In this document: piece after piece, positions 3,264-53,442 of the stretch | Layout: every line of letters begins with the position of its first letter | How positions within the stretch are numbered: the first letter of the stretch is position 1 | IMG/VR virus record: IMGVR_UViG_3300027759_000045 | Span: 1 to 64,000 of that record | Reading direction: 5' to 3' (one strand) | Length of the DNA: 64,000 nt | The notes under the pieces: generated by a model | The model's database searches: none | What the model saw: the letters and a program-made list of their open reading frames with translations, nothing else | What the model was told of the DNA's origin: nothing | Translations under genes and position numbers: made by a program

Positions 3264-3339
3264 GCGCCTGTAGCTCAGGGGTCAGAGCAGGGGTCTCATA
3301 AACCCTTGGTCGTTGGTTCAAAACCAACCAGGCGCACCA
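3264..3339 (+). tRNA. tRNA with CAT anticodon (Ile2-like or elongator Met)
   Basis: Acceptor GCGCCTG/CAGGCGC, D arm TAGCTCAG..AGAGC, anticodon loop CTCATAA, GGTTCAA T-loop, encoded CCA. Confidence 0.92.
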
Positions 3340-5463: not shown

Positions 5464-5942
5464 GAACAGTATACCTAGACATGGATGATGTTGTTGCAGA
5501 CTTCAAAAGTTATGCTGTCAGTGTGCTTCGAAAGACAACCAACGAAGAACGCTGGGCACATGAGGAATGGACTAGACTACGTGACAATCCCAGACTGTAC
5601 CGAGACCTGGACAAGACAGCAGAAGCAGACCGCATTGTTGAAGCCTGCAGAGAAAAGTGCAAGACCAACAACTGGAACTTGATGTTCCTGACCGCAGTGC
5701 CCAAAGGCAATGATGTCAAGTGGGCATTTTATGACAAGGTAAATTGGGTTGCCACACACTATCCCGACATTCCGGTTATGTTTGGACCCTACAGTCATGA
5801 CAAGCATGTGCATTGTCTACCAGGAGATGTGCTGATTGATGACCGTACCAGCAACTGCGAAGAGTGGCGCAAGGCCGGAGGCGTTGCTATTCAGCATCGT
5901 GACAGTGTTGAAAACACACTGAGGGAAATTGCCGACCTATGA
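5460..5942 (+). CDS. HAD-family 5'(3')-deoxyribonucleotidase-like protein
   Basis: YLDMDDVVADF motif I; LIDDR motif IV. Confidence 0.75.
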   Translation: MRTVYLDMDDVVADFKSYAVSVLRKTTNEERWAHEEWTRLRDNPRLYRDLDKTAEADRIVEACREKCKTNNWNLMFLTAVPKGNDVKWAFYDKVNWVATHYPDIPVMFGPYSHDKHVHCLPGDVLIDDRTSNCEEWRKAGGVAIQHRDSVENTLREIADL

Positions 5943-6343
5943 CTCGAGTTGTTGTGAATGGTACATTTGACATCTTGCATGTGGGGCATCTACGATTGCT
6001 CCAGACAGCAAGGGCATACCCTGACTCATACGTGCTGGTACTGTTGGACACAGATCGACGCATTAAACAACTCAAAGGTGCCGATAGGCCTATACACAAC
6101 GAACTGGATCGTTGTACCATGATGTTTGCATTAAAGTCAGTTGACCGTGTAGAAACATTTGACAGCGACGAAGAACTGGCAAGATTAATTCGAGAATTTG
6201 ACCCCGATGTTATGGTCAAAGGCAGTGACTACAGAGACCAGCCAATCATTGGTTCTGAGTACTGCAAAAAAATACATTTTTACGATAGATACCGTGACTA
6301 CTCAACCACCAACACCATTAAGAATATTGCTAGTCGGAGATAA
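5939..6343 (+). CDS. Heptose-1-phosphate nucleotidyltransferase (HldC/RfaE domain II-like)
   Basis: NGTFDILHVGH, KGADRPI, VKGSDY, YSTT motifs. Confidence 0.8.
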   Translation: MTRVVVNGTFDILHVGHLRLLQTARAYPDSYVLVLLDTDRRIKQLKGADRPIHNELDRCTMMFALKSVDRVETFDSDEELARLIREFDPDVMVKGSDYRDQPIIGSEYCKKIHFYDRYRDYSTTNTIKNIASRR

Positions 6344-29075: not shown

Positions 29076-29468
29076 ATGAACAAAGCCGCATTTGCACCAT
29101 ATAAATTATCAGCTGACAGTCTCGAGCCATTGAGAGATGCAGTGATTGTGAGAGACATGTCGTTTGACATGCGTCAAACATCCGCGGGTATTGTGTTATT
29201 AAACGACAACGGAACAGGACTAGGTATCCGTCCACGCTGGGCACAGGTCTATGCGGTTGGCCCAGAGCAACAGGATGTTCGGCCCGGTGACTGGATCTGC
29301 GTGGCCCACGGTCGTTGGACACGTGGAATTGAAATTGACGACAACGGTACTGAACGCACCATCCGACGAGTTGATCCCGGTGACATTTTACTAGTGTCAG
29401 ATGAACAGCCGCAAGATGACACAATGAGCACAGCCGAACATGTGGAATCCAAGCATAGATTTGCATAA
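29076..29468 (+). CDS. groES: GroES-like co-chaperonin
   Basis: LEPLRDAVIV, TSAGIVL mobile loop, VYAVGP..V.PGD. Confidence 0.8.
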   Translation: MNKAAFAPYKLSADSLEPLRDAVIVRDMSFDMRQTSAGIVLLNDNGTGLGIRPRWAQVYAVGPEQQDVRPGDWICVAHGRWTRGIEIDDNGTERTIRRVDPGDILLVSDEQPQDDTMSTAEHVESKHRFA

Positions 29469-29947
29469 TGATTTTCAATCACATCAAAGAACTAAAAGCT
29501 CAAGGCAAAAAGATTGGTATCACTTTCAGTACCTTTGATATGTTGCATGCCGGGCATGTTGCTATGCTGAGTGAAGCAAAGAATCATTGTGATTATCTAA
29601 TCTGTGGACTGCAAACAGATCCCACAATCGATCGCCCCGACACCAAAAACAAACCTATTCAAAGTATTGTAGAACGTCAAATTCAATTGGCCGCTTGCCG
29701 TTATGTAGACGAAGTTGTTGTGTACCAAACTGAACAGGATCTAATTGACTTACTGTTAATTCTTCCTTTGGATGTGCGTATACTGGGTGTAGAATATCAA
29801 GACCAAGAGTTCACTGGAAGATACGAAGGCAGCGAACGAGGTATCGAACTGGTGTTTAACGGTCGCGATCATTCTTTTTCATCAAGCAGTCTCCGCAAAC
29901 GTGTGGCAGCTGCCGAAACATTTAAAGCATTAACTGCTCCAAACTAG
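29468..29947 (+). CDS. Cytidylyltransferase (TagD-like)
   Basis: TFDMLHAGH, SIVER, YVDEV, FSSSSLR. Confidence 0.85.
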   Translation: MIFNHIKELKAQGKKIGITFSTFDMLHAGHVAMLSEAKNHCDYLICGLQTDPTIDRPDTKNKPIQSIVERQIQLAACRYVDEVVVYQTEQDLIDLLLILPLDVRILGVEYQDQEFTGRYEGSERGIELVFNGRDHSFSSSSLRKRVAAAETFKALTAPN

Positions 29948-35327: not shown

Positions 35328-36015
35328 CGTCTTTCTTGAACGTTTCCAGTCGAAGATTATACTTTTCAGCAAAGTCGTTTACTACTTCAAATGTCCAGGG
35401 AAATATTTCCACATAAGGACCTGTGCGGTGTGTGATGCCTGGGTTAGCACGTAAAAAGAACTTGCCATCTGTTTTTAACAAATCTACACAATGACTGAAT
35501 CTAGCTTCAATTTCATCACGTGAGTTGAAGTTAATTGACCCCAGTGCCAAGATAACATCGTACTGATGTTTTACTCGGTACTCTAGAATGTCTACTTCAT
35601 AGTCTGCGCAGTTATTATATGGATCAATACCAACCAGATTTGTGATACGGCCTTTGAATGGATGGTATCCGCAACCAACATCTAGCACACGTTCTGGGTT
35701 CAGCTTGTTGATTTCTTCTACCAGTTCCCAGCCCGAATGTTCGTATTCGCCGGTTCTGGGTTTCCATATTTCGCCAAAGAACCGTAGTATGTAACGCTCA
35801 TTAAGATCATCCACAATACTTCTTACGGTACCTACATAATCGCAGGATAGACTTAGTTCTGCTTCCACAGCGTCCTTGAACTTGCGATAACGTGCAGGTG
35901 TCCAAGGCAGGGCCTGTACCTGAGTATCTGCATCAATTGTGATATCGGCGTACTTGGGCAGGCTAAAAGAGTCCTGCAAATTTTTGCAGATTAGGTTAAA
36001 AATTTTGGTGTTCAT
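35290..36015 (-). CDS. Class I SAM methyltransferase with small helical N-terminal domain
   Basis: VLDVGCG, GIDP, YDVILALGSINF. Confidence 0.75.
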   Translation of the reverse strand: MNTKIFNLICKNLQDSFSLPKYADITIDADTQVQALPWTPARYRKFKDAVEAELSLSCDYVGTVRSIVDDLNERYILRFFGEIWKPRTGEYEHSGWELVEEINKLNPERVLDVGCGYHPFKGRITNLVGIDPYNNCADYEVDILEYRVKHQYDVILALGSINFNSRDEIEARFSHCVDLLKTDGKFFLRANPGITHRTGPYVEIFPWTFEVVNDFAEKYNLRLETFKKDANDRLYFVYQKL

Positions 36016-36107
36016 AGAAAAATTTAATAAATAAAGTAGAATTTTTAACAAACCAGCAAATTATTTGCCAGGCGTTTAAAAATCAAGCATACTATTTAAG
36101 GAACTAT

Positions 36108-37085
36108 ATGTCAATCAAAAAATTATTTGCTGTGCTATTATTAGCACCTGCCCTGGCGTTTGCTTGGGAACCCACAAAGCCTGTCACTGTGTATATTGGT
36201 AACACACCCGGTGCTGGCAATGAAATGGCCTTTCGGAAACTGGCTGATATTGTACAAAAATCCAACCCTAAATTTGTTTATGTTGTGCAGAACATACCCG
36301 GTGCTGATAGTGTCATTGCCAACAACCGGTTTTTGGAAGTGGCCAATGATGGCTACACCATCAACTTGCCCAGCCATATGTCAAGCTATGTGACAAATGA
36401 TATCTGGGAAAAGTCGATTAAAAAGTACAACTACGACAGCTTCGTGGATGTGTTGACCATGGGCAAAAGCCCACTGGTATTAGTTGCCAGTCCTCGAAGC
36501 GGCATTAACACTCCGCAGGAGTTTGCAAAGTATATTCAATCAGGTAGAACAATCAACATTGCCATTGGTGGTGGCGCACATCGCACAGCGTTTGAATACT
36601 TGATGGACAAAGGTCGTGGCAACAAAGACACTGTAAAACCGATCAAATTCAATGGTCCAATGCCAGCAGTGACCAGTGCCGCAAGCTATGACGGCAAAAC
36701 AGGCACAGAATTTGCCATCATACCTATTGCAGTGGCCAAAGCACTAGTAGATGCTGGTAAGGTCAAACCAATTGGATTCACTGGCACACAGAAAATGTCG
36801 CAGTTTCCCACGGTTCCATTGCTTAATACAATAGCACCAGGCATCAATGTATATGCGGCCTGGTCAATTCAATTGCCGCCTGGCACAGATCGAGAAATTG
36901 TTGCCTGGTATCAACAACAATTTAGTCGTGCAGTTCGTTCAGCAGAATACAAAGAGTACACGGATGCCAATGTTATATTCTACGTGGAAGATGAATTAAC
37001 TCCTGCAGGGCTAAAGCGTCACATGGACGATTTAAGAGCTGCCTTTATTCCTGTACTGAGTCGAATTGATTTAAATAAAGAATGA
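36108..37085 (+). CDS. Bug/TctC-family periplasmic solute-binding protein
   Basis: Signal peptide, P.KPV, NIPGA, DGYT, PLVLV, P.VP, W...LPPGT. Confidence 0.85.
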   Translation: MSIKKLFAVLLLAPALAFAWEPTKPVTVYIGNTPGAGNEMAFRKLADIVQKSNPKFVYVVQNIPGADSVIANNRFLEVANDGYTINLPSHMSSYVTNDIWEKSIKKYNYDSFVDVLTMGKSPLVLVASPRSGINTPQEFAKYIQSGRTINIAIGGGAHRTAFEYLMDKGRGNKDTVKPIKFNGPMPAVTSAASYDGKTGTEFAIIPIAVAKALVDAGKVKPIGFTGTQKMSQFPTVPLLNTIAPGINVYAAWSIQLPPGTDREIVAWYQQQFSRAVRSAEYKEYTDANVIFYVEDELTPAGLKRHMDDLRAAFIPVLSRIDLNKE

Positions 37086-37708
37086 AATATATCTTTGTGG
37101 CCGGTGCTCCGGGCTCAAAATGGAGCAGTGTAGTTAAAAATATCTACTACAGTCCTGACATTGATCGGTCAGACTACAGAGATGAATGGACTTATTATCA
37201 CGATGCGTCTGGCACTCGCGAACTCATGCACCTGGGTGCGTATTTTGATCCGGGCATGGCCTCTGCATTGCCCGAGGATTTGACCACACTGACTAGATCT
37301 GAATTAGAAAAAATCTTTGCTGAACCATTTAAATTCAAAGAATCTCATAGCACACGAATTATCAAAAGTCATGTGTTCTCAACGCATCTTGAGTATCTGC
37401 GAGAACAGTTTCCGGAGTCGCCCATTGTGTTGGTGCATCGCCCAGACGATGCTTGCCTGGGCTGGTGGGTCAAGTGCGGGCACTTTGACATAACATATCC
37501 CTCCTATGACATATATTATAAAAACTTAAAGACTATGGCCACGATAATTAAACAACAGAATGTGGGAATTGTCAATGCTTCATTAAAGTACCCAGGACAA
37601 CATCCGTTGACCAATCAACAGTTGGCACGAATGCTGGGTATAGCAGTACCGCCAAAGGAGTATGAACAAAGCTATGGCGCAAGCGACATAAGGGTAACAG
37701 TAATATGA
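37082..37708 (+). CDS. Sulfotransferase-like P-loop protein
   Basis: FVAGAPGSKWSS, IIKSH, VLVHR. Confidence 0.5.
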   Translation: MKYIFVAGAPGSKWSSVVKNIYYSPDIDRSDYRDEWTYYHDASGTRELMHLGAYFDPGMASALPEDLTTLTRSELEKIFAEPFKFKESHSTRIIKSHVFSTHLEYLREQFPESPIVLVHRPDDACLGWWVKCGHFDITYPSYDIYYKNLKTMATIIKQQNVGIVNASLKYPGQHPLTNQQLARMLGIAVPPKEYEQSYGASDIRVTVI

Positions 37709-38367
37709 TAACAGAAGAATTTAAAAGCAGTTGGGATTTTACCAAGAGCCGCAGTACATATCACTTTGATAGTACTGTAAAAGATGCACCGGAATCTGTG
37801 CTCACACACTTAGGGCACATTGAGCCTACTTGGCAAGCAGACATAGCAGACATTGTCAATCATTCTACACCAGCCACCTGGGAAACACGTGGCTACAAAG
37901 GAGAAGGCGTGCTGCCACCACGTGAAGATTTGCTTGCTGAAGAGTACGATGTCTCTCGTGTGGGTGCTGATCCCAAAATGATCATTACACACTTGAACTG
38001 GCAGATACCAGATTCACTGAAAGCAATTACTGCGGCATTTGGACTAGATGACTGTATGGAACGCATACACATACAACAGCCAGGCGAAGTGTGGAATCTG
38101 CACATGGACAAACTGCAAAAATGGTCGCCTGAAGATCCCAGTCGTGTGGGCCGGTACTTTGTTCAACTAACAGACTGGCAACCTGGACAGTTCTGGGAGT
38201 ACGGCAACTATCACTGGAATCAATGGTCAGCAGGAGATGTATCAACTTTTGACTGGGCAAACATACCACACAGCACTGCCAATGCTGGCCATCATCCTCG
38301 GGTGACATTTCAATTAACTGGTGTTATTACAGATCAGACTCGCCGCTTCCTAGCATCTCTACAATGA
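37705..38367 (+). CDS. 2OG-Fe(II)/Asp-hydroxylase-like double-stranded beta-helix oxygenase
   Basis: QQPG...LHMD, PHSTAN.G..PR..FQ. Confidence 0.7.
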   Translation: MITEEFKSSWDFTKSRSTYHFDSTVKDAPESVLTHLGHIEPTWQADIADIVNHSTPATWETRGYKGEGVLPPREDLLAEEYDVSRVGADPKMIITHLNWQIPDSLKAITAAFGLDDCMERIHIQQPGEVWNLHMDKLQKWSPEDPSRVGRYFVQLTDWQPGQFWEYGNYHWNQWSAGDVSTFDWANIPHSTANAGHHPRVTFQLTGVITDQTRRFLASLQ

Positions 38368-38588
38368 ACAAGTATCATGTTAGATTCAACACCAAGCACA
38401 ACGGCAGTGAGTTAGTGTGGCGCATCTTTGAAAATGGTCAGGAGCATCTAGCCTCTGATGTTCGCATCATTGGAGAAACCTACACCGAATGCACAAACGA
38501 ACACGGCGAAACAAAATGGAACATTGCTTGTGAAGGTCGAATGGTCTGGGTTGATCAAGTTGCTGTAATTGTCACAGACAAAGACTAA
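38364..38588 (+). CDS. Hypothetical protein
   Basis: 74 aa coupled ORF. Confidence 0.6.
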   Translation: MNKYHVRFNTKHNGSELVWRIFENGQEHLASDVRIIGETYTECTNEHGETKWNIACEGRMVWVDQVAVIVTDKD

Positions 38589-38622
38589 CAATGAAAAAAC
38601 ACTTTTAAAAAGAATTGGATAG

Positions 38623-39408
38623 ATGACTAATTGGGCACTGCAATATTCCGGCGGATCTGGTGGATTTCTATTGTTACATCTTTTGTTATTGTCGGACAAG
38701 TTTTACACTGCATTTGACAGAAATATACCACTGGCCCAACTAATTCAAGAACACTGGAATATAAAATCTCCTGATCAATGGAAAAGCACTGAAATATGGC
38801 CAGATGCTCAAATCACACTAGACGCCCGGGTTGATTTTGATAAAATCTATTTTCAATGCAATCCATTTGAATACGATTACAACACTGTCTTGAAAGAATT
38901 AGTTTATAAAAAAATTGTTATCTATACAGATTACCAAAGCCAATTGTTATTAGCTCATTATAAAAAAGCAAATTGGTATATTAGTGTCCCTGGGCAAGAT
39001 TTAAAATATATTAAATTTAAAAAAGTTTTAAACAACTGGAAAGACCATTACGCCAATATAAAAGATCCATTGTGGCCAAAATGTCTCAGTGTCAGACATA
39101 TCGATCGTCTACCTGAGAATATACAAAAAGAAATATTAGCAGATCCGTATACTGAATATTTTTTAAATCTTACATATCAGGATCCTAGTGCGTATTTTAA
39201 CAATGAACTGGTGCATGAACCTATGATACCCTATTTAGAATCAGCCGATGTGGCTGTTAAATTGCAAGATTTAGTTAACAGCAATGGAAAAATTTTAGAA
39301 ACATTGTTCGACATACCTAAAATTAATAATAAACAACTGTTGTTGTTAAAAAAATGGAAACAACATCATACCAATGAGTTATTAATCAGCATAGGAATAA
39401 CCCCATAA
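38623..39408 (+). CDS. Sulfotransferase-like/P-loop protein (AT-rich) with DPxWP module
   Basis: YSGGSGGFLL N-terminal loop; YANIKDPLWPKC..LPE.I..EI. Confidence 0.45.
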   Translation: MTNWALQYSGGSGGFLLLHLLLLSDKFYTAFDRNIPLAQLIQEHWNIKSPDQWKSTEIWPDAQITLDARVDFDKIYFQCNPFEYDYNTVLKELVYKKIVIYTDYQSQLLLAHYKKANWYISVPGQDLKYIKFKKVLNNWKDHYANIKDPLWPKCLSVRHIDRLPENIQKEILADPYTEYFLNLTYQDPSAYFNNELVHEPMIPYLESADVAVKLQDLVNSNGKILETLFDIPKINNKQLLLLKKWKQHHTNELLISIGITP

Positions 39409-39421
39409 TACTTTTAATAAA

Positions 39422-40051
39422 ATGTCAAAAACACTTTTAATTTTAACAGGCCCACAGGGATCTGGCAATCATTTATGGAGTAAAATATTTGCACAGCACC
39501 CTGATGTGTACGGATGGCATGCACTGTTGCATGAATACTGGATAGGGCATGATCAAGAGCCCTTTGCTGAATACTGGGAAAATCCTGATTTACTCAAAGA
39601 CTTTGACTGGAGCCGCTGTGATTACTTTGTCACCAGTGTCAGCACACCTTACATGTTCAATGGTGAACGCACAGTACCCGACATTGTGCGTTTTGCTGCC
39701 ACTGCCATGGGCCTGGGTATCTGTGTAAAAATTGCTGTGATTGGACGAGATTGCAACATACTAAACTATCAACAAACTCGTGTGCGCGGCGAGCCCACTG
39801 TTGATATTGCACTTGCTGAATACAAAAAACTACGCACTTGGGATCCGGTATTTTTAAGTTATGAATTATTGCACTTGTACCGAGAAGATTACCTGCGTCA
39901 GATTGCAAAGCAGTTGGAATTCCCAATGGATTTTACGCATCCGCAGTTAACAAATATTCTAGTAGATGATACCAACAGTAAATACTTTCACCCTGTGGCG
40001 CATCATGCCACAGATGATCTAGCACAACATGCTTCAAGGCAATGGCGATAA
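39422..40051 (+). CDS. Sulfotransferase-like P-loop protein
   Basis: ILTGPQGSGNHLW, VIGRD, FLSYE.L. Confidence 0.55.
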   Translation: MSKTLLILTGPQGSGNHLWSKIFAQHPDVYGWHALLHEYWIGHDQEPFAEYWENPDLLKDFDWSRCDYFVTSVSTPYMFNGERTVPDIVRFAATAMGLGICVKIAVIGRDCNILNYQQTRVRGEPTVDIALAEYKKLRTWDPVFLSYELLHLYREDYLRQIAKQLEFPMDFTHPQLTNILVDDTNSKYFHPVAHHATDDLAQHASRQWR

Positions 40052-40890
40052 TTCACCCAATTTTTCTGTCAGAATTATATTTGTCTACTTATGCTGATAC
40101 ACATTGGCACAACTCTGGTCTGGACAGTCCAGAGTTGTGTTCAAATCGTCAACATTATTTTTCATACCCGCATAAAGTTGAGTATTGTTATAATAGTCGA
40201 GGCTTCAGAGATGCAGAATGGCCTGATGATCTAGCCGATGTAATATGGTGCGTCGGCGATAGCTTCACAGTGGGACTGGGAAGTCCGCGTGAACACACAT
40301 GGCCTTATATACTACAGCAACGCTTGGGTCGGCGCACAATAAATCTCAGCCTGGATGGAGCAAGCAATAATTGGATTGCCAGGATTGGATCTGCCATCCT
40401 AGCGGAATTCCCCAATGCGGTTATTGTGACCCAATGGAGTTTCCTACACAGAAGAGAGTTATCTGTGGAAGCATCGTTAAAAAAAGGATTCCCAGAGTTT
40501 TATAAAGCAGTAGCAGATCACAGTTGGCCGCTGTGCAATAATTTAGATGATTTCAAAGAATTACCCGAATGGATAAAACAAGAAATAAAACAACTGCACA
40601 ATTGGCCAGACTGCCTGACTACTAGTGAAAAGAGACGGGCATATTATATAAATTCCACAACCGAAGAGGATGTTGTTAATACTCAATTCTGCATACAACA
40701 ACTTCAAGGCAATGTTGTGCATTCTGCTATTCCAAATTGGGCACCACCCGGAATTGATTTAAACTATGATAATATAATATTAACCAAGCAGTTGGATCGT
40801 GCTCGCGACGACTTTCATTATGACATTCTTACTAGCAATTCCTTAATAGATCAAATTATTCCAGCCTTGGCATCGAATGCCAGGTACTAA
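40042..40890 (+). CDS. SGNH-like protein with DxxWP module
   Basis: YNSRGFRD, GDSFT.G, NLS.DGASN, ARDDFHY. Confidence 0.55.
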   Translation: MAIIHPIFLSELYLSTYADTHWHNSGLDSPELCSNRQHYFSYPHKVEYCYNSRGFRDAEWPDDLADVIWCVGDSFTVGLGSPREHTWPYILQQRLGRRTINLSLDGASNNWIARIGSAILAEFPNAVIVTQWSFLHRRELSVEASLKKGFPEFYKAVADHSWPLCNNLDDFKELPEWIKQEIKQLHNWPDCLTTSEKRRAYYINSTTEEDVVNTQFCIQQLQGNVVHSAIPNWAPPGIDLNYDNIILTKQLDRARDDFHYDILTSNSLIDQIIPALASNARY

Positions 40891-41983
40891 TTTCATCCAG
40901 TGCAATTTTCTTGATATCAGCATCTGTATAAAGATTGCCTACTCCGCTTTGCTTGACCCAGTTATTGTATGCTTCTGCGCATTGATCAAAGTTGCGTATT
41001 AGTCGGCGTTTTTCCATCATGGTTTGCAATTTAATGGGAACACCTGTGACCATTATTTTATGCTGAACTAACTCATTGATTGCTTTGTAACTGTCAATAT
41101 ACTTGCCGGTATGGTGTTGTAAAAACTGTTTATCACCGGCGCTTAGACTATTGAGAATTGCATTTCTAGTCAACACAGGTGCTAGATCTACACTGTCCAG
41201 CTGGTCCGTAGAGTCGAACGTGATTTTTAAGTTGTCAGGCGCAGGCAACTGCGCACTTATACCGCTTATGTCGCTGGCAAGATAATGACATCGATTCCAG
41301 TCTTGAAATTCAATGCCAAATGTGTCATGCCAGGATTTTGTTTGTTGTCCACCAAATATATCTAAACCTAATATATACTCTTCAATTTTAAGCATGTGTG
41401 TTTCGTATTCAAAATAGGAACTTACAGTAAAATGATCATTGACCCACTGTAAATAATTAACATACTTGTTAAGATATGACAGCATTACATTTACATCAAC
41501 GGTAATTCTATTTTGATATATGCCAGCAAATGCATCGATCTTTTCTTGGTGCGTATAAACATTTAACTTTTTTGAATGTCCTTGAATACACCAACTCAGT
41601 GCGTGTTCTAGTAGATTTTTTCGTTGAGCACTGATTATAAAAAAGTTATCGTTTAGGTATTGATAAAACGGTACTTGATTGGCCAATGAATCTTGTCGAT
41701 TCACAATGTGATAATGTGCCAATCGTGCTGTCTTATAGTGATCTGTACTGTGCAAGTGTTCAATTATTTCATTGAGTGTTTGATAATATCCCCAAGGGCG
41801 GTCAGTTGGTTTACCCAGCACTTCTTGATTGAACACAGGACTGTAGTATTTCATTAGCCCGTTTGTGAGTTCATGCAAATTGATTACAGGGCGATCGTAC
41901 GTGTGCGATTGCATGTACACTGTGATCAGACGTTGCAATAGTGTGCTGCCAACTCGGTCCGGGGTTAAAATTAATACATTCAT
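40856..41983 (-). CDS. Sulfotransferase-like (Stf0-like) protein
   Basis: LTPDRVGSTLL PAPS-loop-like motif; R.NLLEHALSW. Confidence 0.6.
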   Translation of the reverse strand: MNVLILTPDRVGSTLLQRLITVYMQSHTYDRPVINLHELTNGLMKYYSPVFNQEVLGKPTDRPWGYYQTLNEIIEHLHSTDHYKTARLAHYHIVNRQDSLANQVPFYQYLNDNFFIISAQRKNLLEHALSWCIQGHSKKLNVYTHQEKIDAFAGIYQNRITVDVNVMLSYLNKYVNYLQWVNDHFTVSSYFEYETHMLKIEEYILGLDIFGGQQTKSWHDTFGIEFQDWNRCHYLASDISGISAQLPAPDNLKITFDSTDQLDSVDLAPVLTRNAILNSLSAGDKQFLQHHTGKYIDSYKAINELVQHKIMVTGVPIKLQTMMEKRRLIRNFDQCAEAYNNWVKQSGVGNLYTDADIKKIALDEISTWHSMPRLE

Positions 41984-41988
41984 GCAAT

Positions 41989-42001
41989 TACTTAGTAAAT
42001 A
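41989..42001. promoter_or_regulatory. Back-to-back late-type boxes (TAAGTA minus, TAAATA plus)
   Basis: Each lies 5 nt from its ATG. Confidence 0.6.
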
Positions 42002-42006
42002 GCACT

Positions 42007-42801
42007 ATGACACAACGTATTTTAATCATGGGCTTACCAGGAGCCGGCAAAACATATCTGGCACAACACATTGTAGATCACTTACAAGCAGAAAAGAAAC
42101 GGGTAGGTTGGCTCAACGCTGACGATGTACGTAAAAAGTACAACGACTGGGACTTTAGCGAAGCAGGCCGTATTCGACAAAGTCTACGTATGAGAGAACT
42201 GGCAGACACAATGGCCGATGTTGATTATGTGATCTGCGACTTTGTTGCTCCATTGGTTGAGATGCGCAACAACTTCAAAGCAGACTGGACTGTGTGGGTT
42301 GATACCATTGACAAAGGTAGATACGAAGACACTAACCGGGCATTTGTTCCTCCTGAACAGTATGATTTTAGAATCACAGAACAGCACAGTGAGAAATGGG
42401 GCGAGTTTATTGCCGCGCATATCTTAGACAACCGTCGTAGACCGGTGTTTGACTGGCAAAAGGAAACTGTTGAACAACTTGGCAGATGGCAACCTTGGCA
42501 TGCAGGTCACCGTGCGTTGTTTGACAGACTGATACAAAAAACAGGGCAAGTATGCATTATGATTCGTGATTGTCAAGGATGGCAAGGTTCAAATCCATTT
42601 GCAATTGATCAGGTCAAAAACGCTATCAAACGAGATTTAGACATGATGTATCAAGGTCAATACGAAATACTGGTAGTTCCTAATATTACTCATATTGGAT
42701 ACGGTCGCGGAGTAGGCTACACAATGGCAGAAGAAAAATTCGACGAATCTATTACAAACATATCCGGGACAGAGATCCGCAAAAGCCTGGGATTAAAGTA
42801 A
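42007..42801 (+). CDS. Adenylylsulfate-kinase-like domain fused to an HxGH nucleotidyltransferase domain
   Basis: MGLPGAGKT, LNAD.VR..DFS..GR, FVAP..MR; GRWQPWHAGH, THIGYGR, ISGTEIR. Confidence 0.75.
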   Translation: MTQRILIMGLPGAGKTYLAQHIVDHLQAEKKRVGWLNADDVRKKYNDWDFSEAGRIRQSLRMRELADTMADVDYVICDFVAPLVEMRNNFKADWTVWVDTIDKGRYEDTNRAFVPPEQYDFRITEQHSEKWGEFIAAHILDNRRRPVFDWQKETVEQLGRWQPWHAGHRALFDRLIQKTGQVCIMIRDCQGWQGSNPFAIDQVKNAIKRDLDMMYQGQYEILVVPNITHIGYGRGVGYTMAEEKFDESITNISGTEIRKSLGLK

Positions 42802-42858
42802 TTTCCTAAATCGCGCACTCTTTGTTGTTCGCTAAATACTTCCATATAAGGTATACGT

Positions 42859-43332
42859 ATGTCGCAACTTGCATGGATGTTTAGTTTAATTCCAGATTTT
42901 ATTTTTGTACTCATTGCCTGGGCCGCTGCTGTAGGCGGGGTTGGACTATTTTTAGCCAGCAAAGCAGTGCGTTGGATTCCCGGTATTGCACTGTACCGAA
43001 CACCTGCTGAGTTAGCAGGCGTTGTGTTGTTGGTCATTGGTGCCTGGATGCTGGGCGGGCAAGCTGCCGATGCACGTTGGCAAGCAAAAGTTGTAGAAGT
43101 TGAAGCAAAGTTAAAAATTGCCGAAGAACAATCTGTTGTTGCCAACACAGAAATAGAAACCAAAACCCGAGAAACAATCAAATACATTCGTGGTCGCACA
43201 GAGATTGTTAAACAATATGTTGACCGCGAAGTGGTCAAGTACGACACCAAGTTCATGCCAGGCGGCATTTGTGAAATACCTCGAGAATTTGTCAAGGCAC
43301 ACAATGATGCCGCAGAAGGACCTAAAAAATGA
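42859..43332 (+). CDS. Putative inner-membrane spanin (Rz-like)
   Basis: N-terminal TM helices, coiled coil, C-terminal Cys; lysis context. Confidence 0.6.
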   Translation: MSQLAWMFSLIPDFIFVLIAWAAAVGGVGLFLASKAVRWIPGIALYRTPAELAGVVLLVIGAWMLGGQAADARWQAKVVEVEAKLKIAEEQSVVANTEIETKTRETIKYIRGRTEIVKQYVDREVVKYDTKFMPGGICEIPREFVKAHNDAAEGPKK

Positions 43333-43901
43333 GAGCTAATGAATTTGTAACTGAAGAACCCAGAACAGCGGCCCCAAAGCCCGAAATAGTATCAGTACAG
43401 GACGATGGCAAAACGATCACAATTAAAGTACGCGGCCATGACGGGGCTGTGCGAGCAATTGCAAATTCGAACCCAGCGGTGTTACAACAACAGTTGAATC
43501 TCAAATACGGGCTAAGACTGCCACACAGCATTGCTAAAAAGTTTGCAGGAATGCCAGCTGCAATGGCCGAAGATCAAGCAGACAATCCCGACAGTTGGCA
43601 GTCACAGGCAGCAGATGCCGAACGTGATGAAGAAACTGCTAAGATGGCTGCGCAAGATGCTGAGGCAGGTGGATTGGCAGAAGAACAACTAGACGAAAAA
43701 AGTACTAGCCAAGCACAGTTCCGCACAATGGCAGCAGCCGCACACAATCCCAAGTTTGCCAAGAAAGTTGGCATCAGCCCGGATGTGGCTCGAGAATTCC
43801 ACGGTGCTGATCGTAAACAAAATTATAAATCATTGCCCCGGAAAGCCGCAGAAGACGCATCCTGGGGAATGGCACCCGAAAGTCGAGGCTACAAGAAATG
43901 A
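43329..43901 (+). CDS. Putative virion internal protein
   Basis: MRANEFVTE leader; QAQFRTMAAAAHNPKFAKKVGI module. Confidence 0.55.
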   Translation: MRANEFVTEEPRTAAPKPEIVSVQDDGKTITIKVRGHDGAVRAIANSNPAVLQQQLNLKYGLRLPHSIAKKFAGMPAAMAEDQADNPDSWQSQAADAERDEETAKMAAQDAEAGGLAEEQLDEKSTSQAQFRTMAAAAHNPKFAKKVGISPDVAREFHGADRKQNYKSLPRKAAEDASWGMAPESRGYKK

Positions 43902-44179
43902 TCAACAAACGTGTCGTAGCTAGTTTAGTCGTACTTGTGACACTTGCAGGATGCTCAACCGCAGTACCAGTTACTGCACGGTTTCCAGAACCTCCTGGGC
44001 TAAACTCTTTAGAACGTTGCCCCAACTTGGAAAAATTAAAAGATACACCTGTGCTGAGTGATGTTGCTAGAACAGTAACCATCAACTATGGCACCTACTA
44101 TGAGTGCGCCGTAAAAGCAGATGCTTGGCAACAGTGGTATCAGATACAAAAAAATATATTTGAAGGAGCCGTTAAATGA
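43898..44179 (+). CDS. Putative outer-membrane spanin lipoprotein (Rz1-like)
   Basis: Lipobox LAGC; Pro-rich; NY..YYEC. Confidence 0.7.
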   Translation: MINKRVVASLVVLVTLAGCSTAVPVTARFPEPPGLNSLERCPNLEKLKDTPVLSDVARTVTINYGTYYECAVKADAWQQWYQIQKNIFEGAVK

Positions 44180-44795: not shown

Positions 44796-44915
44796 ATGTT
44801 AGAAACACTATTTTGGTTGGCATTAGGAGCATTTGTTGGATGGAATTTTCCGCAACCAGACTTTGCAAAACGCATACAGGCCCGCGTCATGGCCGCATTT
44901 CGAAAGGATCAATAA
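44796..44915 (+). CDS. Small membrane protein (39 aa; not in ORF track)
   Basis: MLETLFWLALGAFVGWNFPQP...; AGGAG SD. Confidence 0.6.
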   Translation: MLETLFWLALGAFVGWNFPQPDFAKRIQARVMAAFRKDQ

Positions 44916-44916
44916 A

Positions 44917-45858
44917 ATGACAAAGACAAATTTTTTAGCAACAATTATTTTGGCCTTGGCACCCGTGGTGTCCATGAGTCAAAGTCAAACACCAATTAAT
45001 ATCACAGCAGTTACTCCACAAGGCAGTCCTGCTCAGTTTACCAATTATAGTGGTCTGAATGCTACATTTACTTTTCAAACACAAAACACATTGAATAGTC
45101 CATTTTGTAATACCGGTGCAGGCGATATTTGTACCTTGCCAACTGCAACGGCCGGGGTGAATGCATATCCCATTGCCAACACTCGCTGGGGAACATATAA
45201 ACTTAATAACCCCAATGCAGGTTCATGTGCGCCTGGCATTATGTTTGGCGGTGCTCAATACTGCTTGCTAGAGTTTCACTTTCATGGACCTGCAGAACAC
45301 TGGGTCAACAACTCAGTAACTGATTTAGAAGTACACTTTGTCTATTTTAAACTGGCTGATTTTACAGGTCCTTATGGATTGTGTAATGCAGACAGTTTGT
45401 TGGTGTTGGGTCAGCGCATGGTTGGTAATGGCAATACAGCAAACGCAGCCTGGACCACGGTGTTCAATGCAATACCGGCTGCCAATGCCAGCGGCGCAAA
45501 TTCTGGACAGACCGTGAGTTTCAACATTGCAAGCATGATGGGCATGGCCAACTTTAACACAGCACCAAGCTATAGATACAGCGGTGGATTGACTGCACCA
45601 ATTTCAATTGGTACATTAGGCGCCAACAGTACTTGTGTAGCAACTACTAACCCTGCCAATGGTCGTCCATGGTGGGGCAATCCACAACGTCAACTGACTC
45701 AACAAGCATACCCACAAATTGTTTCTTGGGTGTTGTTTAGACAACCAATACAGTTGTCTGTAGCACAGGTAGCACAATTTAAAACTGTGTTCCCTGATGG
45801 CAATGCTCGTGCTGTACAACCACAAGGTTCTACTGTTTATTTTGCCAATCCAAATTGA
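44917..45858 (+). CDS. Secreted alpha-class carbonic anhydrase
   Basis: Signal peptide, QTPINI, EFHFH.PAEH, LEVHFV, YRYSGGLTAP, V.WVLF, NARAVQP. Confidence 0.85.
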   Translation: MTKTNFLATIILALAPVVSMSQSQTPINITAVTPQGSPAQFTNYSGLNATFTFQTQNTLNSPFCNTGAGDICTLPTATAGVNAYPIANTRWGTYKLNNPNAGSCAPGIMFGGAQYCLLEFHFHGPAEHWVNNSVTDLEVHFVYFKLADFTGPYGLCNADSLLVLGQRMVGNGNTANAAWTTVFNAIPAANASGANSGQTVSFNIASMMGMANFNTAPSYRYSGGLTAPISIGTLGANSTCVATTNPANGRPWWGNPQRQLTQQAYPQIVSWVLFRQPIQLSVAQVAQFKTVFPDGNARAVQPQGSTVYFANPN

Positions 45859-52686: not shown

Positions 52687-53442
52687 ATGAATTATCTAGT
52701 AATTTACCCAGGACGTTTTCACCCATTCCACAAAGGTCACAAGGCCAGTTATGATTGGCTGAACAAACAGTTTAGCAACGACAGTGTTTTTATTGCCACC
52801 AGTGGTGTACAAGCACCTGTTACAAGTCCGTTCAGTTATTCCGACAAAGTAATGATGATGACCAAACTGGGCATTCCTGCTGGTCGCATTGTCAACGTAA
52901 AAAATCCATATCAAGCTGTTGAAATTACCAGTGCTGTTCCCGATGAAGAAAAGGCCAACACAGTATTGGTGTTTGCTGTGAGTGCTAAAGATGCAGAACG
53001 TTTTAATTTTGCTCCTAAAAAAGATGGCACCCCTGGGTATCTACAACCATTGCCTAAAAATAAAAAGTCAATAAAGCCCATGACCAAACATGGCTACGTT
53101 GTGATCACTCCCACTATCAACTTTCGAGTAAATGGCGTAGATGCCAACTCTGCATCCGAAATACGCAAAATGTATCTCAAAGGCAACGACCGTGACAAAG
53201 ATCAAGTGATTGCTGATTTATATGGTCAACCAGATTTGGCAATTCGCGCAGTGTTTGATAAGAAATTGGGCATTTCGGAACAGGCCCAAAACTATATTCG
53301 CGAAGCCAGGCAATTTGGCAATGTCAAGGTTGTGGAATGGCTGGAGAATGTGTTACAATTAGAAAAACAAGTAAACAGCGTCCACGCTGATTTCGCACAC
53401 ATCAACCCTGATTACATAGACGAAAAAACATATAATCGATAA
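52687..53442 (+). CDS. HxGH cytidyltransferase-like protein
   Basis: YPGRFHPFHKGH, SPF, SASEIR. Confidence 0.75.
   Translation: MNYLVIYPGRFHPFHKGHKASYDWLNKQFSNDSVFIATSGVQAPVTSPFSYSDKVMMMTKLGIPAGRIVNVKNPYQAVEITSAVPDEEKANTVLVFAVSAKDAERFNFAPKKDGTPGYLQPLPKNKKSIKPMTKHGYVVITPTINFRVNGVDANSASEIRKMYLKGNDRDKDQVIADLYGQPDLAIRAVFDKKLGISEQAQNYIREARQFGNVKVVEWLENVLQLEKQVNSVHADFAHINPDYIDEKTYNR

Follow-up and report, generated by a model that had tools for sequence, protein, structure and literature searches.

A giant phage gene fusing a trimmed APS kinase-like domain to a small NMNAT-like nucleotidyltransferase, a candidate minimal PAPS synthase

How can a protein of only 264 residues combine an APS kinase with an HxGH nucleotidyltransferase, and could such a protein make the sulfate donor PAPS? 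PAPS and APS are the only entry points of sulfate into biology, and two enzyme types, Sat and CysDN, are known for the first step. We address this question for a gene located at 42007-42801 (+) in a window of 64,000 nucleotides (positions 1 to 64,000 of the IMG/VR record IMGVR_UViG_3300027759_000045), which belongs to a complete 347-kb jumbo phage. A sequence-only reading had proposed that this gene encodes a very small bifunctional sulfate-activating enzyme with a Sat-like C-terminal domain. We find that this function is the best-supported explanation, but not for the reason given there, as the C-terminal domain is not of the Sat type.

The gene is intact, running from the ATG at 42007 to the stop codon at 42799-42801. 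A longer GTG start at 41941 is possible. However, it would overlap the divergent minus-strand gene that starts at 41983, and homologues begin at the ATG with the P-loop at residues 9-16, so the ATG is preferred. The motifs GLPGAGKT (residues 9-16), GRWQPWHAGH (159-168), ITHIGYGRG (227-235) and ISGTEIR (252-258) are all present. The similarity is far more than chance, as the protein matches PHROG 10255 at full length (E 2.8e-45), and more than 7,800 metagenomic homologues were found, with 2,062 representative clusters. The AlphaFold model has a mean pLDDT of 94.7 and two compact domains. A megablast search of the region 36000-44000 against phage genomes found nothing, and eight literature searches found no description of this family.

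The N-terminal domain (42007-42444 (+), residues 1-146) is a trimmed APS-kinase-like P-loop kinase. It scores 45.2 bits against the Pfam model PF01583 (cut-off 21.1, E 1.3e-11), although only model positions 5-94 of 152 are covered and all NCBIfam CysC models score below their cut-offs. The top 40 or so Foldseek matches are almost all APS kinases, from archaea, bacteria, fungi, plants and humans, with probability 1.00 and a target TM of 0.57-0.73 for stand-alone kinase chains. In an alignment with canonical CysC domains, G9, L10, G12, G14 and K15 of the Walker A motif (42031-42054 (+)) are invariant, as are D39, R42, F50, R55, R61, F79, P82 and R87, while F/Y106 and P116 are nearly so. Judging from APS kinase structures, these include the residues that contact APS, i.e., the aspartate of DGD, R42, F50, R55 and the second aromatic residue at position 106. 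However, two segments of about 11 residues are missing, and the one that holds the mobile lid helix (KGLYKKAR) is deleted in all mini-kinases.

The C-terminal domain (42454-42798 (+), residues 150-264) is a minimal HxGH nucleotidyltransferase of about 115 residues, and a model of the domain alone has a pLDDT of 93.9. A six-frame search of the whole phage genome with the ATP-sulfurylase model PF01747 found nothing at E<=1, although the control genomes gave matches. Nor did a search of PDB with the family profile return any Sat at E<=1, and Foldseek returned none in its top 50. In structural alignments with VIA-align, Thermus Sat ranks only sixth (Z 8.8, 114 aligned residues), behind NadM (10.5), NMNAT (10.4), PPAT (10.3) and NadR (9.3). 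The QxRNPxHxxH active-site motif of Sat is absent.

Instead, the nearest relatives by sequence and fold are archaeal and NadM-type NMNATs. The family profile hits 1f9a at E 9e-13 and 2qjt at 7e-11 over the first ~78 positions, and an NMNAT is also the first-ranked Foldseek match. The resemblance to the NMNAT motif GRFQPFH, which the sequence-only reading mentioned only as a caveat, describes the true ancestry. The motif GRWQPWHAGH (42481-42510 (+)) is of the archaeal NMNAT type, with R at H-5 and Q at H-3, and G159, R160, Q162, H165 and H168 are invariant in 45 homologues. The ISGTEIR motif (42760-42780 (+)), with invariant T255 and R258, corresponds to the ISxTxxR motif of the superfamily and aligns with SGTEIR of NMNAT and of Aquifex Sat. 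However, the alignment to NMNAT breaks into two stretches and skips about 30 residues between the third strand and the SGT motif, a segment that probably helps to form the NMN site, and the domain has 115 residues against 168. The curated NMNAT models of NCBIfam, PRK01153 and TIGR01527, score 23.1 bits against a cut-off of 127 and 22.2 against 181. Further, two family-specific arginines are present. R187 is nearly invariant and aligns with a glycine in 1f9a, while R234 is invariant and lies in the loop YGRGVGY (42700-42720 (+), residues 232-238; family consensus YGRDVGY), in which G233 and G237 are also invariant. It can be speculated that this loop is an anion (sulfate) site.

Domain fusions and gene pairs suggest a link between this transferase and APS. 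The same mini-transferase, with 42% identity, is found as the N-terminal domain of a fusion with a full, canonical CysC, where PF01583 scores 212 bits and all motifs are present. This architecture occurs in SAR11-like contigs and in 177 protein clusters from marine metagenomes, and both domain orders exist. In SAR11 and SAR86, the mini-kinase (136 aa) and the mini-transferase (124 aa) are overlapping adjacent genes. In a sample of 61 genomes of the SAR86 order, the transferase was accompanied by a mini-kinase in 28 of 28 genomes, next to it in all but one, and a sulfotransferase gene lies directly beside the pair in five genomes. The contexts of two loci from soil Alphaproteobacteria with the fused form were uninformative, and two short contigs gave no context.

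The phyletic distribution fits a role in PAPS supply. Among the 61 SAR86 genomes, Sulfotransfer_1 is present in 31, of which 26 carry the pair, while Sat was found in 1 genome. CysD and CysNC were found in only one genome, which has sulfotransferases but not the pair. The complete genome CP097973 has sulfotransferases, but no Sat, no PF01507 protein, no AprA and no other APS-kinase hit. Among 61 genomes of Pelagibacterales, the pair is in 47, Sulfotransfer_1 in 53 and Sat in 3, while CysD is in 5, all of which lack the pair. A paper states that most SAR11 lack ATP sulfurylase although they have AprAB (PMC10356861). However, these statistics are not corrected for phylogeny, many of the genomes are MAGs or SAGs of at least 80% completeness, and the genomes lacking the pair tend to be the smallest. 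In 4 SAR86 and 4 SAR11 genomes with sulfotransferases, no pair, Sat or CysD was found. A replacement of CoaD, NadD or RibF was set aside, as SAR11 and SAR86 genomes with the pair also hold other CTP_transf_like genes of the expected sizes.

In the phage, the gene sits among sulfotransferase-like genes. The divergent neighbour (40856-41983 (-), 375 aa), whose start lies 23 bp from the start of the fusion gene, has Stf0/Sulfotransfer_1/3 as its nearest named Atlas clusters (scores 0.94-0.95). Its motifs TPDRVGSTLLQR and RxNLLEHALSW are conserved across 16 homologues (R121, N123, L124, E126, H127, L129, S130 and W131 invariant), in the style of PAPS-binding loops. A 209-aa protein (39422-40051 (+)) without any Pfam hit also has sulfotransferases as its nearest named Atlas clusters (0.94-0.95), and a 208-aa protein (37082-37708 (+)), conserved in the syntenic phage L110, has a weak Sulfotransfer_3 match (PF13469, E 3.8e-4, below the cut-off). 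These identities are only suggestive, as phmmer or profile searches against PDB gave nothing relevant, 1,745 homologues of the 375-aa protein carry no Pfam domain, and PF00685 and PF09037 found nothing in the phage genome. Alignments with hhalign to bona fide SAR11/SAR86 sulfotransferase domains were not significant (probability below 2%), although the aligned stretches are the PAPS-loop regions. The region also contains an SGNH/GDSL-like protein of 282 aa (40042-40890 (+); weak Lipase_GDSL_2 hit, 35% identity to L110), whose homologue is fused to the mini-kinase in a related phage, and, at its upstream edge, a TctC-like solute-binding protein (36108-37085 (+); PF03401, 69.4 bits). No phage PAPS reductase was found with PF01507, and PAPS reduction by a phage enzyme is therefore not the use. 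Other phages carry the fusion among nucleotide or cofactor genes with no recognisable sulfotransferase.

We suggest that the gene encodes a minimal PAPS synthase, with a probability of about 0.62; no member of the family has been assayed, and sulfate as the acceptor, the order of the two steps and the use of PAPS by the neighbouring genes are inferred. In this scenario, the C-terminal domain, which descends from archaeal/NadM-type NMNATs, adenylylates sulfate (ATP + sulfate -> APS + PPi), and the trimmed APS kinase then phosphorylates the 3'-OH of APS to give PAPS, which pulls the unfavourable first step forward. In the phage, the PAPS would feed the sulfotransferase-like enzymes encoded next to the gene. 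In SAR11 and SAR86, which are among the most abundant bacteria in the sea, the same two domains, as adjacent genes or with a canonical CysC, would be the sulfate-activation route of the cell, and in SAR11 the transferase could also be the missing partner of AprAB.

A further-reaching version of this idea, about as likely as not, is that the mini-transferase of ~115-120 residues is a third, independently evolved class of ATP sulfurylase, derived from NMNAT and the smallest known, which together with the trimmed kinase would be the previously missing sulfate-activation system of SAR11 and SAR86. Run in reverse, it could complete the AprAB sulfite-oxidation pathway in SAR11, and phages would have captured it as a fused auxiliary gene that feeds their own sulfation module. 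Such an enzyme would close a gap in marine sulfur metabolism and change how it is reconstructed from genomes, give the smallest known scaffold for making PAPS, useful for enzymatic sulfation, and show that phages carry complete sulfation modules.

Other explanations are unlikely but cannot be excluded. The pair could act on another small anionic substrate and make a nucleotide-activated, possibly 3'-phosphorylated, compound for the neighbouring transferase-like and SGNH enzymes, analogous to PPAT plus dephospho-CoA kinase or to the phosphonate or sugar-phosphate cytidylyltransferases. PPAT ties with NMNAT as the structural neighbour, a phosphonate cytidylyltransferase (Fom1) also matches (Z 8.1), the mini-kinase is also fused to an unrelated sugar-1-phosphate-type NTP_transferase and to an SGNH domain, and the neighbours are not proven to be sulfotransferases. 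However, the fusion of the same transferase to a canonical CysC points to APS as the shared intermediate, and other sources of PAPS are nearly absent from SAR86 genomes with Pfam-level Sulfotransfer_1 genes, while none of the genomes with CysD carries the pair.

Slightly less probable is that only the kinase half takes part in sulfate activation, using APS from CysDN or Sat of the host, or from AprAB, while the C-terminal domain does something else with adenine nucleotides, for example regulation or turnover of a by-product. A syntenic phage has the kinase without the transferase, Ralstonia jumbo phages have the kinase domain alone, and AprAB could supply APS in SAR11 without a sulfurylase. 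However, SAR86 genomes with the pair have no AprA, Sat or CysD (Sat being found in only 1 of the 61 genomes), so APS would have no source. The invariant catalytic HxGH and ISxTxxR residues argue for a working transferase, and the two genes occur together in SAR86.

Least likely is a NAD salvage enzyme resembling NadR with its domains in reverse order, in which an NMN (or NaMN) adenylyltransferase would be joined to, for example, a nicotinamide riboside kinase, since despite the NMNAT ancestry of the C-terminal domain, the location of some phage homologues among nucleotide-metabolism genes and a COG3236/NADAR-GTP cyclohydrolase II neighbour in Bacata-like phages, the N-terminal domain is an APS kinase by family, fold and APS-binding residues, and the missing NMNAT segment, the low NMNAT scores, the fusion to CysC, the phyletic distribution and the other CTP_transf_like genes in the host genomes all speak against it.

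Compared with the animal bifunctional PAPS synthases (PAPSS1/2) and Aquifex Sat-CysC, one polypeptide would likewise carry an APS kinase and a sulfate adenylyltransferase, with the same proposed chemistry and coupling of the two steps, and the kinase-transferase order is that of PAPSS. However, the phage protein has 264 residues against about 620, its transferase half is not a Sat domain and has no PUA-like domain, and its kinase lacks the lid helix. Compared with CysC, the fold, the P-loop, the DGD-type aspartate and the two arginines and two aromatic residues that hold APS are kept, but the domain has about 140 residues against about 180-200. The archaeal and NadM-type NMNATs (e.g. 1f9a, 1ej2 and 2qjt) share the GRFQPFHxGH, NPF and SGTEIR motifs with the C-terminal domain, and the first ~78 residues match in both the profile alignment and the Foldseek superposition. 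The YGRDVGY loop is specific to the family, and the domain is coupled to APS kinase and sulfotransferases, not to NAD genes. Finally, the proposed reaction is that of Sat and CysDN. Sat belongs to the same broad nucleotidyltransferase fold class and shares the SGTxxR motif, and the resemblance to its GRD loop is too short to establish equivalence, but there is no specific homology to Sat and none to CysD or CysN, the domain is a third to a quarter of their size, and no GTPase coupling is present. Like CysDN, the pair seems to fill the sulfate-activation slot in genomes.

The open reading frame at positions 42007-42801 (+) of the window is real and intact and encodes 264 aa. All the motifs listed in the sequence-only reading are present: QPWHAGH (within GRWQPWHAGH, residues 159-168), ITHIGYGRG (227-235) and ISGTEIR (252-258). 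The P-loop GLPGAGKT (9-16) is present as well. A GTG at 41941 could extend the frame, but homologues start at the ATG. The divergent minus-strand gene, which encodes a 375-aa protein, begins at 41983, so the two genes start only 23 bp apart and point away from each other (41983-42007). Their promoters must therefore overlap or lie inside the neighbouring coding sequences.

The gene belongs to a complete 346,856-bp virus record with direct terminal repeats, i.e., a jumbo phage. An endolysin, PhoH, a clamp loader and a tRNA-Met (CAT) lie nearby, the last at 3264-3339 (+), and it is the only tRNA in the window. Just downstream of the GH19-like endolysin, at 44833-45858 (+), is a 341-aa protein with a eukaryotic-type (alpha) carbonic anhydrase domain (PF00194, 57.8 bits), which is unusual cargo for a phage. 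The phage also holds four further cytidylyltransferase-like genes, at 5939-6343, 29468-29947 and 52687-53442 of the window and at 266597-266896 of the genome (locus L004 1060-1815, -). Two are RfaE domain II / heptose-1-phosphate adenylyltransferase-like, one is fused to a mannose-6-phosphate isomerase-like C-terminus and one has an NMNAT-like N-terminus. Together they suggest extensive nucleotide-sugar or cofactor metabolism.

The N domain is a trimmed APS kinase. Pfam APS_kinase scores 45.2 bits against a cut-off of 21.1, but only over model positions 5-94 of 152. A phmmer search finds solved APS kinases, and the AlphaFold model (pLDDT 94.7) has APS kinases from all kingdoms as its top Foldseek matches. 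The alignment with canonical CysC domains shows two deletions of about 11 residues, one of which holds the lid helix KGLYKKAR. However, the P-loop, D39 (the second Asp of DGD), R42, F50, R55, R61, F79, P82 and R87 are invariant in the same alignment, while Y/F106 and P116 are nearly invariant. From the APS kinase structures, these residues are expected to be the ones that hold APS.

The C domain matches no curated family. CTP_transf_like has E 0.03, and the NCBIfam NMNAT models score 22-23 bits against cut-offs of 127-181. A profile built from 45 homologous domains hits archaeal NMNAT 1f9a at E 9e-13 and NadM 2qjt at 7e-11 over the first ~78 positions, but no ATP sulfurylase at E<=1. Structurally, a model of the domain alone (pLDDT 93.9) is closest to NadM and archaeal NMNAT, then PPAT, by Foldseek. 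By VIA-align the order is NadM (Z 10.5), NMNAT (10.4), PPAT (10.3) and NadR (9.3), while Thermus ATP sulfurylase is sixth at Z 8.8. Thus, the domain is an offshoot of NMNAT-type transferases and not a Sat, with which the sequence-only reading had compared it, although that reading also noted the NMNAT-like character of the HxGH motif. Compared with NMNAT, about 30 residues between the third strand and the SGT motif are missing. The domain carries a family-specific loop (family consensus YGRDVGY) with invariant R234, and a near-invariant R187 that aligns with a glycine in 1f9a.

The family is large, with more than 7,800 word-search hits and 2,062 representative clusters, and the two domains occur in several arrangements. 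The kinase::transferase form seen here is found in phages such as Xylella phages Sano and Salvo and in Stenotrophomonas and Xanthomonas phages, at 35-39% identity, and also in some soil Alphaproteobacteria. The reverse order, transferase::mini-kinase, occurs in the protein P0218. The mini-kinase exists alone in Ralstonia jumbo phages, and it is fused to an SGNH domain in the protein P0145 and to an NTP_transferase in P0254. The most telling architecture is transferase::canonical CysC. These 310-aa proteins score 212 bits on PF01583 with every CysC motif, and their N domain is 42% identical to the phage C domain. This architecture fills 177 clusters from marine samples and lies on SAR11-like contigs (L012 10001-10936 and L015 4432-5364) next to an MFS/PTR2 transporter, a 655-666-aa protein with no known domain, a giant RTX-like protein of 1,600-2,000 aa and TPR-sulfotransferase or TPR-2OG-oxygenase proteins. 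This looks like a surface-protein sulfation island.

A scan of species-representative genomes found the mini-transferase mainly in Pelagibacteraceae and SAR86, at up to 57% identity to the phage domain, where it is a 124-131-aa gene. Where the flanks were read, in SAR11 HIMB1495 and in the complete SAR86 genome CP097973, it overlaps the end of a 136-aa mini-kinase gene. In the complete SAR86 genome the gene just upstream of the pair (locus L019 6649-7548) is a PF03601 (YeiH-type) membrane protein, a family often annotated as a putative sulfate exporter.

To study the distribution of the pair we first examined five genomes that carry it: two SAR11, two SAR86 and one Pseudolabrys MAG. None of these has Sat. 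The two SAR86 genomes have no PF01507 protein and no AprA, and their only APS-kinase hit is the mini-kinase, yet both still carry Sulfotransfer_1 genes. Other CTP_transf_like genes of CoaD, NadD and RibF size are present, so the pair is not replacing those.

Next, 61 SAR86-order genomes were sampled. The mini-transferase is found in 28 genomes and is accompanied by a mini-kinase in all 28, adjacent to it except in one genome, G006. Sulfotransfer_1 is present in 31 genomes; 26 genomes have both, 2 have only the pair, 5 have only the sulfotransferase and 28 have neither, while Sat was found in 1. Fisher's exact test gives p = 4.6e-10, although this is not corrected for phylogeny, the sample includes incomplete MAGs and SAGs, and the genomes lacking the pair are on average smaller. 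Canonical CysD and CysNC occur only in G017, one of the five genomes with sulfotransferases but no pair. In five genomes (G018, G037, G046, G050 and G058) a sulfotransferase gene lies next to the pair, and in four of these it points the same way, like an operon.

A sample of 61 Pelagibacterales genomes, which also includes incomplete MAGs and SAGs, was then examined. The mini-transferase is found in 47 genomes, Sulfotransfer_1 in 53, both in 44, Sat in 3 and CysD in 5. All five CysD genomes are among the nine that have sulfotransferases but lack the mini-transferase. In one genome (G080:C1:283949-284289) the mini-transferase matches in two overlapping pieces in different frames, which suggests a frameshift or a pseudogene. 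In agreement with these counts, it has been remarked that most SAR11 lack ATP sulfurylase although they have AprAB (PMC10356861). This is the signature of non-orthologous displacement: in most of the sampled genomes where Sulfotransfer_1-family sulfotransferases (taken here to be PAPS-dependent) exist without Sat or CysDN, the pair is present, and where CysDN is present, the pair is not.

In the phage, the gene lies in a module that is conserved in a related phage (L110/L111) at about 57% amino-acid identity. The module holds a TctC-like binding protein, a protein with a weak Sulfotransfer_3 match, further 200-260-aa proteins, an SGNH-like protein and the divergent 375-aa protein. The TctC-family (tripartite tricarboxylate transporter) solute-binding protein lies at the edge of the module, at 36108-37085 (+), and in L110 a glutamine amidotransferase takes that position instead. 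For the 209-aa and 375-aa proteins, the nearest named clusters by protein-language-model features are all sulfotransferases, scoring 0.94-0.95. The 375-aa family keeps the motifs TPDRVGSTLLQR and RxNLLEHALSW conserved, and these resemble the two PAPS-binding loops. However, profile methods do not confirm this, so the neighbours are only probably sulfotransferases. The phage has no Sat and no PAPS reductase.

In the syntenic relative the kinase is fused to the SGNH protein and no mini-transferase is present. This fits an optional APS-supplying add-on, but it also shows that the module can work without it. Elsewhere, the fusion sits among cofactor or nucleotide genes: MetK and ThyX in one case, PurA, IMPDH and Fe-S genes in another, and MazG in Sano. 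Sano-like phages (Xylella phage Sano, L001 2211-2888 and 4024-4704) carry the fusion a few genes from an annotated cysteine dioxygenase and the MazG-like pyrophosphatase, while in Bacata and Bhz60 the neighbour is a COG3236/NADAR-GTP cyclohydrolase II protein.

We suggest that the best explanation is a minimal PAPS synthase, as the sequence-only reading had proposed. The NMNAT-derived mini-transferase would make APS from ATP and sulfate, and the lid-less APS kinase would convert APS to PAPS. The domain identities, the fusions, the gene order and the distribution are clear from the data; however, sulfate as the acceptor, the order of the two steps and the roles of R187 and R234 are only inferred. 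It remains possible, though unlikely, that the pair acts on another anionic acceptor, or that only the kinase takes part in sulfate activation. Both ideas are weakened by the CysC fusion and by the SAR86 genomes that have sulfotransferases but no other source of APS or PAPS, and neither can be excluded without an assay. An NMNAT/NAD function is the least likely alternative and is weakened by the same observations, but in the absence of an assay it cannot be excluded either.

Public annotations of this protein are inconsistent, including hypothetical protein, adenylylsulfate kinase, GTPase SAR1 and phosphopantetheine adenylyltransferase, and we found no description of it in the literature. Sulfate activation itself is known, and what would be new is the enzyme type that performs its first step. 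Compared with the known systems, the protein qualifies neither as a Sat nor as an NMNAT, while it shows most of the characters of an APS kinase, apart from the lid.
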